DNA of 64,000 nucleotides from Kudoa neothunni (Eukaryota > Animalia > Cnidaria). The position numbers and the translations under genes were made by a program. The DNA lies in assembly GCA_964304625.1 (NCBI GenBank), contig OZ199840.1, forward strand, positions 10,881,224 to 10,945,223. The letters run 5' to 3'. The notes under the pieces are model-generated. The model made no database searches. It was not told where the DNA came from and worked only from the letters and a program-made list of their open reading frames with translations. Positions 27,988-49,516 of the stretch are shown piece by piece (the stretch's first letter is position 1; the number at the start of each line of letters is the position of its first letter).

Positions 27988-28530
27988 TCAATCTAACAGA
28001 TCGATCATGCCGATACTAATTAAATAATCTTCAACGTCTGATGTGGGGAAATCATCGATACCACCGAAAGCATCAAACCCCACGATTCTCTTGGCAACTA
28101 CTCCTTTTTTGAAACAGAAGATAGTGGGTATAATTCTACATGCCAGTTTCTCACACAATGGTACAAATCGTTCAACATTGAGAGAACAAATTCTAGTTTC
28201 AAGATGTTTTTCGGCGAGTAGTTTGAGGTGCATGTCCAAAATTTTACACCTGGTGGAATCACCCTTGAAAAAGTGAATAATTAATCGCTCTTCATCTCGT
28301 CCGATAATGAAAAATTCTCTCTCATCGACCAATTCTTTGTATTCGCCATGCCCTATAGAACGAAGTCGTTGAGCATCTTCCTTGCGTTTAATCATTTTCT
28401 TTAATCGTTCACTTCTCATCTTCTCGAGTTCATCCTGGTTTCCCAAGACGTTATCCAAGTAGTTGATTTCATCATCGATGATGTTCTCTACATTGGAGAG
28501 GACTTTTTTTTCAATTTCCTCCTGTTTCAT
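27988..28530 (-). CDS. TXNDC9: Thioredoxin domain-containing protein 9 / phosducin-like protein 3; intronless CDS
   Basis: Motifs ELEKMRSERL, GHGEYKEL..E.EFF, HFFK..STRCKILDMHLKLLAEKHLETR and IPTI..IVGF..FGGIDDFPT are typical of PhLP3. Confidence 0.93.
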   Translation of the reverse strand: MKQEEIEKKVLSNVENIIDDEINYLDNVLGNQDELEKMRSERLKKMIKRKEDAQRLRSIGHGEYKELVDEREFFIIGRDEERLIIHFFKGDSTRCKILDMHLKLLAEKHLETRICSLNVERFVPLCEKLACRIIPTIFCFKKGVVAKRIVGFDAFGGIDDFPTSDVEDYLISIGMIDLLD

Positions 28531-30071: not shown

Positions 30072-33000
30072 CTAAAACATTGACATTCCAGTAGATTCTT
30101 TGGGATGAGGCTTAAATTAAAAAATCAAAACAATTCACTATGTCCAAGGACAGATTACCACAGCATTAAATTGTACATATTTTGGTGTGCAATCCGAGTC
30201 GATATGTATGAATGCCCCTTTGTTTGTGTTGATATCACTAAATTATGGTGAGTGGAATATTCAAGATAGCAAATAAATTACCAATAATTTGGCGCCGAAA
30301 AAATAGTTATACACTTGCCATCGTGGTCAATTCTGTATCCATCTTCGACCATCTCATGACTTCTTATGATGAAATCTAGATTGGTATAACAATGATAAAA
30401 AAATTAATCTGAATCGAATTAAATTGAGAAGAAAACCAACCAAGATTGTTTAAAGAACAGAACCGTTCAGTAACATCAGGTCCAAACAACTTGCTAGTGC
30501 CTCTGTGACTGGGAGCCCATCCATCCTACAATTGGATTTAGTATAGCACTCAATTATCAAGTGTTACTTTGTTGTGAGGATCAGCCCATAAAAGATCACA
30601 CATAACAGCTAAATATTTAGCCATCAATTGAGAATACCACCATAAATATTATATATATATATATATATATATAACTATACATCCATCGGTAACTTCGGTG
30701 AATCGACTTATTCGACTAATATCATCCAAAGTGACTCCATCTTTGGAAGGAAGCCCCCCGTGCACCACCTAAAACAAACCCGTTACCACAAACTCACCAA
30801 GTTAATATACAAATATTTTTCCGTTGATAACAGTGGCAAGTGGTAGATGTTTGAAAACTTCACTGAATAGGTTGAACACATACGGCGAATATTTATTATG
30901 GACTTGTTGTTGGAACCCGAACATTTGGTTCATTGCTATGGTTTCATGGTTTCCTATAAAAACAGTTTCGTTTTACTTAGCACAGGAAGCTCATTGTATA
31001 TTTTGAAATGATATTTAATTGTATATATAGTTTGCGAATGTCCACCACCATGTGCATTCGATAGTGATGGTCATCAGACAAACAAATTAATATTGGTCAA
31101 GTATCTGAACTGCACAACACACATTTTATTGTACAAATCACCAATTGACCGTCAAACATAGATGCATACACATATTTTTAAAATGGAGCATTCGTTTGAA
31201 GTACCTCGGTTCAACAAAAATTTTCCGGGATACAAAACCATGTAACAGAACAGCACTGTTATGACTTCAATTGAAAATGCTCCTCTGTCAACAAAATCCC
31301 CATTGAAAAGCTAAAAATGGAACGGATTAATTAAAACCGAATATATCAAAATTTTTGAGTAAATTATTAAAATTCATTTAATAATTACGCAGTAAATAAA
31401 TAATGTGATTTTTATAATACAATCCTATAATAAATAATTTATGATTAATTAAAAGCACTAAGTCACATCGTTTTCAAACTATCAACCTTATTCTATGAAT
31501 ATACATACATATTCTGTGGTCACAATAAAACTATCACCTTTCATTATTTCTAATTAAGCACTAATTATATTTACTATTATTTTAGAACGAACTATTAAAG
31601 ACTGAAATTATCTAATACAACAAATTCTAGTGTTTAATGATGAGTTATCCATTTGAGAAAAAAAAGTGAAATCGAAATTAACAATACATGAACTAAATAC
31701 AATAAACTAACGGCATACTGTGTATGTCATTATATTTTAGCATATTTTTTCATAATCTTATCCTTATAAGAAGAGAAATAATAATAATATGATTTCAGGG
31801 TTATACTTTTGATAGTTTAATCCTTTTAAACTTCAACGTGCTTTACAATAAATACCGAAAATCACTCGTTCTCAGAGAATATTGACAATATAACCAAATA
31901 TTTTATGCAACGAATAATCACAGCTTTAACTTTAAGGCGACGGACCATACCGCTCTGCAGTTGACTGTGTATATATAAGTCTTGGTTACAGTCCTTACAA
32001 CCAACCATTGCATCAAGTAATCAGAAAAATGAATAAAACCATCAAATTAACAAATATTCTCAAAAAATAATTCTTTGTATTTATCGGGCATGCATTCGCC
32101 TAGGTAGTGCAAGGCTGCCAGGGGTGTTTAAAAAAATCCAAGGATGGACCACCAAATAATATAGTCGTATCTATTAACGATTTTAATTTTCTTCCGGTTC
32201 TGTAATTACGTCTTCAAATATTAAATTTAAATTAATCGTCGTATTATTTAAATTTTTTGGCGTTAACACTCAATCATACTTAATGTTTAGCATAGATCAA
32301 TATTTTCACAATTAAATACTTCATAGTTCAAGTTATATTTAGAAATAACGTTTAAAATTTCCAATAATATGCGACGGTGTTTATTGAATAATTATGCAAT
32401 TGTGCCAAGTTAACAATCTAATGTGCTGTTGTTCAGTATCGTAAATGTTTAAACCCTGCATAATGTAATCTGAATAGAATACCTTATTAAAAATATGAAT
32501 GCCGCGCATAAAAAAATTATGTTATTATTCACTGTTTACATATTTTAAATAGAAACCCAAGATTTTGTAAAAAATAAAAAAACCACTAAGAATCTAAAGG
32601 AATCTAAAGTGATCATAAAAACACAAGCTCTGTGTATTGCATAAATTTTAGTTATTGTCGAGAAATTCGAAATTTACATAATAGAAAGGATAACTCACAA
32701 TTAATCAGTAATAACACTAGATTATCCTTAATTTAAATTAAAAAATTGGTTCAGTTGTATCGCATTAATATATTAATATAATCGACAGTTATTGAGTATT
32801 TTTTGTTGGTCCCAAAAATTACACAACATCCAAAGTTTATTGTGGTTCGAGCATTCACGAAAATGTGAAAATTAAACCAATAAATTATGGCACAATTAAA
32901 TTTTATTGTAATTGAATAAACAATATAAATGGAGAATAATTCCGCACACAACTAAGCTAAAATGATTTTATTTAAGAATTTTATAAAAATTAGACTTTTC

Positions 33001-33543
33001 AAAAGGATTATTATAGAGTTTGAATAATTTATCGCCAAATCCCCGTTACGTTTTCAATACACCGTAATGTATTAAATGAGCGGATTTAGTGATAAAAATA
33101 TTTGACAAATTTATTCACATTTTATCATGGATTATTGCGATCAACTTAATTAACCTTCCGCGCGCTTTAAGGTCTATTCGACACCAAAACATTTTGTTTT
33201 ACTAATTTTATATACTTATTGGAATCAGATAAGGTTAATATCTGGTGTATTCTCCTAAAAGGAACACAATAATTTTATAATCATTTATTTTATAAAAATA
33301 TTACAGTTTTTATTGACTCTAACAACTGCAAAAATTATTATATGCATCATACTAAAATTAAAACAGATTTTATCGAATAAATTAAGAGAAAATAACGAAA
33401 CAAAGAACGACGATGTATACTCCGACCAAAAATAGTGTGATATGGAATACTGAAGTCCCGAAAACATCGAATGTGTGCAAAGAAAGTATTTTAAACAATT
33501 ATCAAATGTGGAATTCCGCGCCTACATAGTACATAGGTGTGCT

Positions 33544-33574
<31 letters not shown>

Positions 33575-36500
33575 CAATATTCAAATCAAAATTAGAGTCT
33601 AAAAACACTTTGGAGTAAGGATAAAGGTAGGGAAATATTTAGAAGTATCATGCCTTTGAGAGGATTTATTGAAATTACAAGAGCACTCCATTTCGACGAT
33701 GATACAACCAGAGCCGAAAGAAAACCAACCGATAAACTTTGTCAAATACAGGAAATATTTGAAAATATCAAGAAATTAGTCCAATTTAACCGTTAATGAA
33801 CAACTGGTTGCTTATTTGAGGAGGAAATGCCTTCTAAACCGGCTGGCTGTATATGTAATCAAATTTTTCTTGTTTGTTGACCTATCAACGAACTTTTGTC
33901 ACAATATCTCGATTTATCTTGGAAAACAAAATAATCTAAAATAATCCAAAATAATCAAAGAGTAGAATGTTTGGGTGAAAACATAGTGTTAGACCTTGTG
34001 TCGTATTTAAAAGACAGTGGTAGAAATATTGTCGCTGATAAACTATTAAACCTCGGTATAACTATAACAGTGGTTGGAACAATCAGGCCAAACAAAAGAG
34101 ACATCCCCGAAGTATTGAAGACAAATAAATCTAGGGAATTTTATAGTACACTTTTTCTTTTCCATGGGGAAGAAAAGTTGGTGTCTTAAGTCCCAAAAAA
34201 AAATGAGTCAGTTATACTTTTGGTTACCTCCTCAGTAAATACAAATGTGGCTTCTGATGAATGCAAAAAACCTGAAGTCATTACATATTACAACAACAAA
34301 AAAGGTGGTGTGGATACTGTCAACCGAATTCTCGTTTCGACTAATGTCAAAATATACTCAAAACGTTGTTGTTTATTTTATTATTTTAGATATCAGTCCA
34401 ATAAATTCATTTTATCTTTATAAACTCGTACTTAATGGAAACAAAATTAGGAAAGAACAGTTTCTGGATAAAATTGCGGACGAATTTGTCAAATTGCCGA
34501 AAAAGATGTGGCGCTGTGTTCAAGGAATAATGACCGAAAAACTAAGAATTCTTGCATTATTTGTTTAAGATTTTGTTGTGAGAAACACTTTCAGTTTGTC
34601 TGCATTGAGTGCTCAGCAGATAATAGAAATTAATATGATTGATGATGGTTTTCTATCATTTCACCTCCATTAATTTGAGATTTCTCTCAATTAAAATTTA
34701 AGTTACATGTAGGGTCATTCGAATTCGCTTGAACCATTATTAATTAATGATGACTATTTTAATTCTTATGAATAATAATAATAATAATACGATATTTATT
34801 AGAATATTTAATAAATTTTCTACTAAATCTAAATCATTCAGGTTTATAAATGTTATAATATTATCACACGAGATTGGAGCGAAGGAATTAAATCTATCGT
34901 AATGCGTTACTCCCCCTCGAACATTGTCGCCATTTAATAATTTTACATATTTTTACGTATTTTTACAATAATGTCTAAATTCCCATGCGAGCTTTAGATA
35001 AACTATCGCCTTTAAACTTTAAAGAGCCAATAATAAAAACGTGTGGTATAATAGTTAAATAGACCCCAAAAAGCACAAAGTATGTAGTGGATTTTGATGC
35101 GTTCGGAAGGTTAAAATGACAAAAACTACTGGCAAGGTAAATTATAATTCTCAAACGTATCTGCGTAGTCGCGGTCTAAATTTGTTTGTAATCTCAACAA
35201 CTTTCACTCAAAAGTGACATACACATTCAAATATTTGTGGCCCATCAATTCGTCCTTAGAAGTCAGAAATAATGATAATTAAATATAATAAATACCAATT
35301 TTATAAAAAGCGTTAACGTCACAAATAATTATTTTTAAGTATTTATCGCGAACTAAAAAAAGATATAACTTACGTAAAAATGTTGATCAGAGGGATAACC
35401 ATCGGTTTCAAAAATATTGATGAAATCAAAAAACTGACCATGCACATCACCACACACAGTCATTCTGCCATCCTAAGAACACATGATATCTACCACATGT
35501 AGATAGAAAAGCAACATTTACTTCAGGCGTATTGACACGAACTAATGATGGCAAATTAACCAAATAATCCTTGGCCAATTTCAATATCTATTAATTTTAT
35601 ATAAATCTCCAGATCTCAGCCAACTGTAATCTACTGTAAGAAGGTATTTTGAGCAAAGCATTCGTCGATCTTTGTAGAATTTTATGAGATCGGTGACAAA
35701 TTCCAACGTTATTTTGTATTTGCCTTCGGTCTCATCGTACAACAAATGTGGACCTTCGTATTTGCTATCTACACCTAACAACCAACCATCAAGAAATAAA
35801 AAGCTCGTCAAACAAACGACAATTATCTCCTACTTAAAGATTCCACATTCAGTGAATCTATCATCAACTTCTGTTCGTATGATATAGCTTCGGCGAATAG
35901 ACTTTGGTTGATTTTATTTTGGCAATATTTATAATTATTTAATGTATTTTTATCATGAGGTTTAATCTTAACGATCTAAAAATAGGAAAAAACTCATGAA
36001 ACTATTAACGGGTAAATTCGCGCAAATTTTTATGCTAAAATTCAACTCGTACATGCTTAAAATCTGAGGAGGCCTCCCTAAATTTCAACATTGCCATATA
36101 GGCAGCACCACGTCTATAATATGCTTTCAAATAGTTAGAATCCAATTGGATAGCTAAATTAGCATCTTCAACCGCTTGTTGATATTTCTCCAATTTCAAA
36201 TAGCAAAAACTTCGATTGGCATAAAGAATCGCATTCTCTTTGTCCAAATCGATAGCTTGGCTATAAAGATCACATGATCTAATAAACTTCCCACCTAAAT
36301 TTCACACATTACCAATTACTCAAACCAATAGATAATAATAGATAATCATAATAGGTAATAGATAATAGGTAATAGATGGGTGTATATAATTTAATAAGTG
36401 GCCAATTAAGTTTATTGTCTCGTAATTCCTTAGGGATTAAATAACAACAACCTTCTTGTGCACACAATACATCCCATACATTCAATACAATAATTCTATC

Positions 36501-47264: not shown

Positions 47265-49516
47265 CCCTTTCGTGCCAAATGTCCACCCTAGTACCCAAAA
47301 AATTAAACGTCCCATAAATATGCACGTTAAATTTATTTAGATGATTTATTGAATTATTACACTTTTTAAAAGTTAAATGTTTGTTTTTAGTGATAGCCAA
47401 TTAAGTAAACTAAGAGACCTAGCATTTATAGTAAGTTAAATAGAAATCCTTACATAAAATAAACAGGGAGTACAAGAAATTCAAATTTATGCACATGCAG
47501 TCAGTTTTTTCTCGTCGAAAAAAATTTGAATTTGGAAACGTTAAAACGTGATTCAATGTGCTACATTTCATTAGACACATGACAACCTATCAAAATATAA
47601 TGACTAATCAACACATGGATCACGATTTGGTTTTTAGATGTTCAAAAGAGGGAAAAACGACAACTGAAATTGTGGTATTTCCTGATGCGGATATTTCTGA
47701 TCCAGAAGAATACGTTGAAGATTTTGGAACACAAAATCTCGAAGAAAGGGTGCTTTAGGCGTACACCGAAAATAATCAAGATTCAGACTGTTCTGATGAG
47801 GAAGTTGTACCAACCTTTAATTGGAATATAGGTGAAACCTTTGCAAATACGCCAAATAAGTCGGAGACGGAAGATATTGTTTTTAGTGAAGTTACCGATC
47901 TCGTTTTACCGATAAATTATTTCAACTTCTTTTTCAATGAAGACCTGATTCTGTTAATTATTGAAAAGACAAATTTATATTCGGTTCAGCAAAATTCTAG
48001 TTTTCGAGTTGGTAAAGATGATATAAAAAAGTTTATAGGAACGTTGATTATCATGGGAATTGTCAAAATGCCGAGATATCGTTGCTATTGGTCTAAAACT
48101 CTAAATTACCCACCTGTTTCTGAGTTTATGTCGAGAACCCACTTCTAAAATATTTCAAAATATTTACATTTCACTGATAATTCAAAATTTATCACAAATC
48201 CAAATTCTTCAGAATATGATAAATTTGCAATGATTCGACCGGTTTTGGATTCTATTAGAACAAATTGTTTGAAAGTTGAATGTGGACGAAAGAACTCAGT
48301 TGATGAGCAAATTATTCCATTCAAAGGTAGGTGTAAAGCGAAACAATATGCTCCAAAGAAACCGATGAAATGGGGACTCAAAATGTTCACGAGATGTGGA
48401 GTTAATGGGCGGCTAGTGCATGATTTTTATCTGTATGATGGGAAAAACCCCAAGGTGGTTAAAAGTTGTGGTCTAGTATCCGGTGACTTTGTTATAAAGT
48501 TGTGCGAGAGTTTACCCTTGTGCAAAACTTACTTTGTCTACTTCGACAATTGGTTTACATCCATTCCTCTTCAAATTTTATTAAAAAAAGGAGAATTTGA
48601 GAGTTTGCACGACTCTAATGATAATATTTCCATAACGCGTTGGTTTGACGGATCTGTTGCAACTTTCTCATCAACCCATTCTTCAATCCAACCGATTAAA
48701 ATGGCGAAAAGATTTGACCGTTCCAAAAAAATCATGATTGACATTCGGTGCCCTGCAGTTGTAGCTGAATATAACCAAAATATGGGAGGAGTGGATCTTT
48801 CAGATATGTTGAGTTGATGTCGCTCTATGTAATGAAACATAAATGTAAGAAATATTACATGCGAATTTTCTTCTGGGCCCTCAATACATGTATTATAAAT
48901 GCGTGGTTATTATATAAGCGAAATTGTACGATTCGAAAATTTCCAAAGAGAGATATACTGAACTTGGTGAATTTTTCATTGAAAATAAGTGAAAGTCTTC
49001 GTTAATACCAAATAGCAAGTGCTCCCAAAAAACGTGGTAGACCGACTCTTAATAATTCTTTCGAAACAATTGATGATAAATATGAAAGAACTGAGAGAAT
49101 AAGAACACATCCTCTCAGTAATCATATTCGACCGGATAACGTAGGGCTTTATCCTGAAATAGTGTCAATTAAATCCAGGTGTAGAATATGCCAACGAAAA
49201 ACTCAATTTAAATGCACTAAATGTTATTCTTTTTGTTGTATTGTTAAAGATAGAAACTGTTTTTTAAATTATCATAGTTCAAATATCTAAAAAATGTTCA
49301 AATTTATTTTGTTTGTTTTGTGCGCAATTCAATGCGCGAAATCGTAGTTTTACCACCTAAGCCAACTGTCCACCTCAGTACCCACGTTAAAAACGGCTGA
49401 AATTATACTTCTAATTAATTTATATCTCAATAAAATCATTAAATATAGGATTTTTAGTGCCTATAATATATTTTAAAATATCGTGAAATGAAATAAAAAA
49501 TATGGGTACGAAAGGG
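47265..49516 (+). mobile_element. piggyBac transposon with both termini and an inactivated transposase
   Basis: TTAA|CCCTTTCGTGCC ... GGTACGAAAGGG|TTAA. Motifs SVDEQIIPFKGR..KKPMKWGLK, YFDNWFTS, EYNQNMGGVDLSD and a C-terminal Cys-rich domain RCRICQRKTQFKCTKC..CFLNYH. It has premature stops, a frameshift and an internal deletion. Confidence 0.95.

Follow-up and report, generated by a model that had tools for sequence, protein, structure and literature searches.

Box H/ACA guide RNAs for the pseudouridines (Psi) at positions 43 and 44 of U2 small nuclear RNA (snRNA) are established in vertebrates (SCARNA8/U92) and in S. pombe, and the Drosophila counterpart, scaRNA:PsiU2-35.45, covers U2 position 45 (PMC5473140, PMC8763049). 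U2 Psi43 is among the most conserved of snRNA modifications. SCARNA8 is responsible for Psi43 and Psi44 alike, and two neighboring uridines can be served by a single loop (PMC8763049, PMC5473140). Guides with one snRNA and one ribosomal RNA (rRNA) target are known as well, namely snR81 and Drosophila scaRNAs, small RNAs specific to the Cajal body (PMC6298559). Here we describe a candidate for this group in a stretch of 64,000 nucleotides (nt) from the cnidarian Kudoa neothunni (assembly GCA_964304625.1, contig OZ199840.1, positions 10,881,224 to 10,945,223, forward strand), hereafter called the window. A 251-nt intron of a PP5 (protein phosphatase) gene in this window probably encodes a genuine box H/ACA guide RNA for U2 Psi43, and perhaps also for Psi44. 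A first-pass annotation of the window had found the element and had read it as a dual-target guide with a second site in 18S rRNA. Since guides for U2 Psi43/44 and mixed snRNA plus rRNA guides were both already known, the novelty it claimed was overstated.

The candidate RNA lies in its intron in the sense orientation. What is the host gene? The exons on either side (Table 1) join in frame at ...LLNR-G-NHET..., the glycine codon being split G|GA. When the exons were searched one at a time, the downstream one matched PP5 structures in PDB with E about 1e-11 (best 8e-12) and PP1 and PP2A structures with about 1e-4. Exons encoding TPR repeats lie at about 36035-36247, upstream within the same gene. 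The structure matches and the upstream TPR exons therefore identify the host as a PP5 gene (PPP5C-type), as had been proposed. The intron had been placed at 31204-30957; a minus-strand GT..AG intron is indeed there, but its 3' end is at 30954, so that the earlier boundary was off by 3. The next four introns downstream measure about 42, 72, 43 and 64 nt. The host intron is thus several-fold longer than these, and the candidate RNA is its sole content. The earlier description of its neighbors as introns of about 50 nt suits these four but not the intron immediately upstream, which is about 4 kb long (window 31311-35365, minus strand). This 4-kb intron carries degenerate open reading frames (ORFs) for a piggyBac-type transposase on the plus strand (33971-34568), with motifs such as YYNNKKGGVDTVN.

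Folding bears out the claim of a hairpin-H box-hairpin-tail unit: the segment 31150-31017 forms two hairpins separated by an 11-nt hinge, AAUAUUAAUUU (31094-31084), that contains AUAUUA, and ends in a tail. In the 5' hairpin the lower stem, GGUCAA/UUGACC, consists of six Watson-Crick pairs, and above it the internal loop UUGGUGAU / UUCAGAUAC supplies the pocket strands UUGGUGA(U) and (UU)CAGAUAC. This hairpin has a folding energy of -18.9 kcal/mol when it folds freely, and of -14.5 kcal/mol when its pocket is kept open. The 3' hairpin has the lower stem GUUUGU/GCAAAC and the internal loop CUGAUGA / ACAUUC, which can close on itself by 4 base pairs (bp); with the pocket forced open its folding energy is -15.3 kcal/mol. 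The terminal loops are AAAUGUG and AAUGCA. In the tail, the three overlapping AUA triplets start 13, 15 and 17 nt from the top of the 3' pocket (1, 3 and 5 nt beyond the stem of the 3' hairpin) and the only ACA starts at 19 nt (7 nt beyond the stem), so that the AUA placed 13 nt from the pocket by the earlier annotation is where it was said to be. Compared with dinucleotide shuffles, the fold of the 151-nt region has a minimum free energy z score of -2.7, and 3 of 200 shuffles were as stable. Architecture and H-box spacing thus fit the description of box H/ACA RNAs (two hairpins, an ANANNA hinge, about 130 nt). Between the 3' end of the candidate RNA and the 3' splice site lie about 65-70 nt. 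Its flanks, AUGUUUGA and UUAAAUAU (window 31152-31159 and 31011-31018, minus strand), could pair and so join both ends, and the hinge sequence UUAAUU is complementary to AAUUAA past the ACA. Both complementarities are A+U-rich and may be due to chance.

The genome contains a single U2 snRNA gene (L001:1501-1685; G000:C2:7003100-7003284), against which the 5' pocket could be compared directly. The branch-site region of this U2 is GUAGUAUCUGUUCUCAUCAG; it is numbered as in human, with C47 in place of the U that human and yeast have at this position. The pairing with the pocket is GUAUCUG|UUC|UCAUCAG, that is 7+7 bp with two G-U pairs, and it is a better fit than with the U2 sequence of other species on which the first-pass annotation had relied. 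CAGAUAC forms seven Watson-Crick pairs with GUAUCUG, as claimed. The pairing of UUGGUGA likewise held up, but with two G-U pairs instead of three, because C47 of the organism's own U2 turns one of them into G-C. Both guide strands abut the lower stem, and U43, U44 and C45 are left unpaired between the paired arms, so that the pocket frames U43 and U44 as had been said. The distance from the first nucleotide of CAGAUAC to the H box, 14 nt, agrees with the 13-16 nt rule for H/ACA RNAs (PMC8763049). The pocket was also compared with a target set of about 7.4 kb made up of the organism's own U1, U2, U4, U5 and U6 snRNAs, 5.8S and 28S rRNAs and the 3' part of 18S rRNA. The U2 site was the best target, with a score of 13; the next best scored 10.5.

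Table 1. Positions, in the window, of the candidate H/ACA RNA, its parts, and the PP5 intron and exons around it
Feature	Position	Strand	Remarks
Candidate box H/ACA RNA	31017..31150	minus	about 125-134 nt depending on 3' box; hairpin-hinge-hairpin-tail, sense orientation in intron
5' hairpin	31095..31150	minus	56 nt; 6-bp lower stem, 8+9-nt internal loop, 10-bp upper stem, 7-nt loop
5' pocket, 5' strand UUGGUGA	31138..31144	minus	fits own U2 U46-G52 (UCAUCAG), 7 bp, 2 G-U
5' pocket, 3' strand CAGAUAC	31101..31107	minus	fits own U2 G36-G42 (GUAUCUG), 7 Watson-Crick bp
H box AUAUUA (fits ANANNA)	31088..31093	minus	in hinge, 1 nt past 5' hairpin
3' hairpin	31030..31083	minus	54 nt; 6-bp lower stem, 7+6-nt pocket, 10-bp upper stem
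3' pocket, 5' strand UGAUGA	31071..31076	minus	with preceding C, C-box-like CUGAUGA
3' pocket, 3' strand ACAUUC	31036..31041	minus	internal loop of 3' hairpin
Tail UAUAUAUACAAUU	31017..31029	minus	AUA at 31028-26, 31026-24, 31024-22; ACA at 31022-31020
Upstream PP5 exon (LFNGDFVDRG...LLNR)	31205..31310	minus	carries PPP-family motif GDFVDRG
Host intron, PP5 gene	30954..31204	minus	GT..AG, 251 nt
Downstream PP5 exon (NHETIAMNQ...GKIF)	30811..30953	minus	best PDB matches are PP5

Several results weigh against a U2 guide in this intron, and they bear on different rival explanations. In the first place, the U2 pairing leaves three target nucleotides (UUC) unpaired where two are canonical; pockets with more than two are allowed (PMC8763049). 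In 5.7% of trials, shuffled versions of the G/U-rich 5' pocket had a site in the target set at which they reached the score of 13. Both points would suit a real H/ACA RNA that acts on some other target (a tRNA, an mRNA or the missing part of 18S rRNA, for example) or is an orphan, its fit to U2 being fortuitous. We consider this very unlikely, since U2 is clearly the best target among the organism's own RNAs and the match falls on the one U2 site for which guide RNAs have been conserved between fission yeast and vertebrates (PMC5473140). When only U2 nt 31-60 were considered, 43 of 200,000 shuffled pockets scored 13.

Further adverse points come from comparisons with other data. In the window no match attains the gathering score of its Rfam family, and the covariance-model search of the intron that the first-pass annotation had suggested found no meaningful family at E up to 10; nor did the scaRNA families, SCARNA8/U92 included, match the intron at that threshold. 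Neither terminal loop contains a CAB box (UGAG); the rules for CAB boxes are uncertain outside vertebrates and flies. The only sequencing runs that contain the locus are four DNA runs, all from one sample. Three RNA runs under the same species label had 0 reads from it, PP5 exons included, and hence offer no test of expression. Two word-based protein searches (one with a 180-amino-acid ORF, the other with a PP5 exon) found no relatives, and a metagenome scan with the exon-containing ORF gave none that could be confirmed. As to Rfam, a second unit gives some perspective. A 228-nt intron of RPL32 (L015:3225-3452; G000:C3 about 5893225-5893452) contains another hairpin-hinge-hairpin-ACA unit of similar layout, whose 5' pocket fits U3130 of the organism's own 28S rRNA (UUGA|UC|CUUCGA), the snR10/SNORA21-type site. 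Rfam has no match to this H/ACA-like unit either, and the Rfam blank therefore says little in this genome.

Could the structure be a product of chance? On this explanation the intron is merely long, its hairpins and its complementarity to U2 are coincidental, and no stable RNA is made. The genome is compact and A+T-rich (40.3 Mb in 4 contigs), and at 71% A+T the ANANNA and AUA/ACA motifs are cheap; the H box AUAUUA is by itself weak evidence. Complementarity to U2 is also common if stems are not required, about 100 pocket-like pairs of a 9-mer and a 10-mer in the 64-kb window scoring at least 13 on U2 nt 31-60. The blanks in Rfam, in the RNA runs and in the searches for relatives fit chance too, and the 4-kb intron shows that long introns occur in this gene. 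The rarity lies in the combination of the complementarity with the stems, the second hairpin, the tail and the sense position in an intron. Genome-wide, a degenerate pattern of pocket and H-box spacing occurs in 271 places compared with 111 for the reversed control, and among 38 of the pattern places examined one had a perfect 6/6 lower stem, namely this intron. From these figures we estimate roughly that far less than one such case would be expected by chance per genome. Chance would have to bring together two hairpins (lower stems of 6 bp, upper stems of 10 bp), an ANANNA hinge of 11 nt, a pocket whose two strands both adjoin the lower stem, and 14 bp, correctly spaced and in sense intronic orientation, at a pseudouridine site known to be conserved. 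Moreover, the 4-kb intron is explained by its piggyBac remnant, while the host intron has no repeat content. The candidate RNA is single copy in the 40.3-Mb genome, with no paralogues, and is therefore not a repeat; no tRNA genes were found in the region. We accordingly regard chance as unlikely.

The preferred explanation, a U2 guide, starts from features that were observed directly (the sequence, its fold, its pairing with the organism's own U2 and its sense intronic position), from which we infer that the RNA accumulates, binds the H/ACA proteins and modifies U2. As is usual for intronic small nucleolar RNAs (snoRNAs), splicing of the PP5 intron would be followed by debranching, and exonucleases would then trim the intron down to the guide RNA. 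The internal loop of the 5' hairpin would pair with U2 on either side of U43-U44-C45. Of the unpaired uridines U43 is the 5'-most, which makes it the substrate under the canonical rule; 14 nt away from the H box, it would be presented to dyskerin/Cbf5 at the base of the upper stem. U44 might be reached too, given the three unpaired nucleotides. The conserved pseudouridine or pseudouridines would thus be made beside the branch-point recognition sequence of U2, and the other half of the H/ACA particle, together with the 3' box, would come from the 3' hairpin.

The 3' hairpin is open to two further readings. Its internal loop includes CUGAUGA (31077-31071), which resembles a C box, and the best Rfam match, although not significant, is to snoZ199 (19.7 bits, E 0.85; gathering score 47). 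These features might suggest a box C/D snoRNA. Downstream in the intron, however, no D box (CUGA) follows, a terminal stem is absent, and the C-box-like motif is buried in a stable hairpin; for lack of a D box and terminal stem, the sequence effectively refutes a box C/D snoRNA.

The second reading is the one in the first-pass annotation, and is a special case of the U2 guide: the RNA would have dual specificity, the 5' pocket serving U2 Psi43/44 and the 3' pocket, with an AUA box at a distance of 13 or 15 nt, guiding the UU of GAAUGU-UU-UCAUUA, in the loop of a small, variable hairpin of 18S rRNA. This target sequence is taken from other species. ACAUUC and UGAUGA pair with it by 6+6 bp with one G-U, which uses the whole of the small pocket, and shuffled 3' pockets equalled the score of this pairing in 0.45% of trials with the target set of about 7.4 kb. 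No alternative target for the 3' pocket scored above 9 among the organism's own snRNAs, 28S, 5.8S and the 3' part of 18S. The two AUA positions are within the 13-16 nt range (PMC8763049), and snR81 is a precedent for a mixed guide (PMC6298559).

There are several difficulties with the 18S target. The first is that the organism's own site is missing from the assembly. The only ribosomal DNA (rDNA) unit in the assembly (G000:C2:5421060-5426748; L002, L008) has complete 28S and 5.8S genes, but its 18S covers only positions 1158-1823 of the Rfam small-subunit (SSU) model, with unrelated A+T-rich DNA in front of it. None of the 4 contigs contains the 5' half of 18S, and neither the 10 kb upstream of the unit nor about 20 kb downstream of it yielded any SSU sequence. 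Nothing in the genome matched patterns drawn from the claimed site, from the 530 loop or from the AAGAACGAAAGT motif, a species-specific 18S word was not found in metagenome contigs, and a search with a spurious antisense ORF of 18S returned distant eukaryotes only. Secondly, the site itself differs between animals. In aphid 18S (L046:6050-6150, on an rDNA contig, minus strand) it reads GUACGUUCUCGUAUGAUC, forming UACG-UUCU-CGUA, where the metazoan sequence is AAUG-UUUU-CAUU; the small hairpin is the same in the two and its pairs covary in a compensatory manner. Because aphid 18S differs there, the sequences compared indicate that the site is variable and not universal. Thirdly, the modeled geometry of the 3' hairpin is weaker than that of the 5' hairpin, in that 4 bp can form across the pocket itself, the sole true ACA is too far away (19 nt, and 7 nt from the stem) and an AUA box is needed. 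Finally, the site is not known as a pseudouridine in yeast or human. The rRNA targets predicted for Drosophila scaRNAs, for their part, proved to be unmodified in vivo (PMC6298559). The dual target is thus a tentative proposal, and we think it rather doubtful.

Elsewhere in the window there are ORFs with a DDE_Tnp_1_7 domain (48230-48814), with a galactosyltransferase domain (PF01762; 42320-42892, plus strand) and with a weak thioredoxin domain (27991-28530, minus strand); a word-based protein search found no relatives of the last.

If the candidate RNA is real, a guide RNA that is invisible to Rfam becomes annotated in a compact and divergent animal genome, and a concrete single-copy element is available for deletion or probing; no new mechanism is opened. 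The 18S loop target is the only somewhat new element of the proposal. Were it true, a lineage-specific rRNA modification would be coupled to a spliceosomal one through a single intronic RNA in the gene of a signaling phosphatase.

How, then, does the candidate compare with known guides? Its closest counterparts are SCARNA8/U92/pugU2-34/44 and Drosophila scaRNA:PsiU2-35.45, which like it are intron-encoded, have two hairpins and direct one pocket at U2 U43/U44. The layout is not the same, however: SCARNA8 has its 43/44 pocket in the 3' hairpin and uses the 5' one for Psi34, whereas the candidate has its 43/44 pocket in the 5' hairpin and lacks one for Psi34, the 3' pocket fitting U34 by only 4+4 bp with two G-U pairs. 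The candidate also differs from SCARNA8 in having no Rfam similarity and no visible CAB box. We therefore make no claim of orthology, and view it as a likely functional analogue of SCARNA8. Outside vertebrates, the S. pombe H/ACA RNA (Deryusheva & Gall 2017, PMC5473140) has the same targets, U2 Psi43 and Psi44. It is encoded downstream of RPC10, the candidate in an intron. The existence of an S. pombe guide for Psi43/44 means that this U2 site is guide-dependent in distant lineages. For the proposed pairing of one snRNA pocket with one rRNA pocket, the parallels are yeast snR81 (U2 Psi42 and 25S Psi1051) and Drosophila scaRNA:PsiU1-6 and PsiU2-55 (PMC6298559). The U2 site of snR81 corresponds to vertebrate position 41 rather than to 43/44, and the rRNA that snR81 targets belongs to the large subunit, whereas the putative rRNA target of the candidate is in 18S. 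Judged by these comparisons, the candidate is a credible but unproven addition to the known types of U2 guide.

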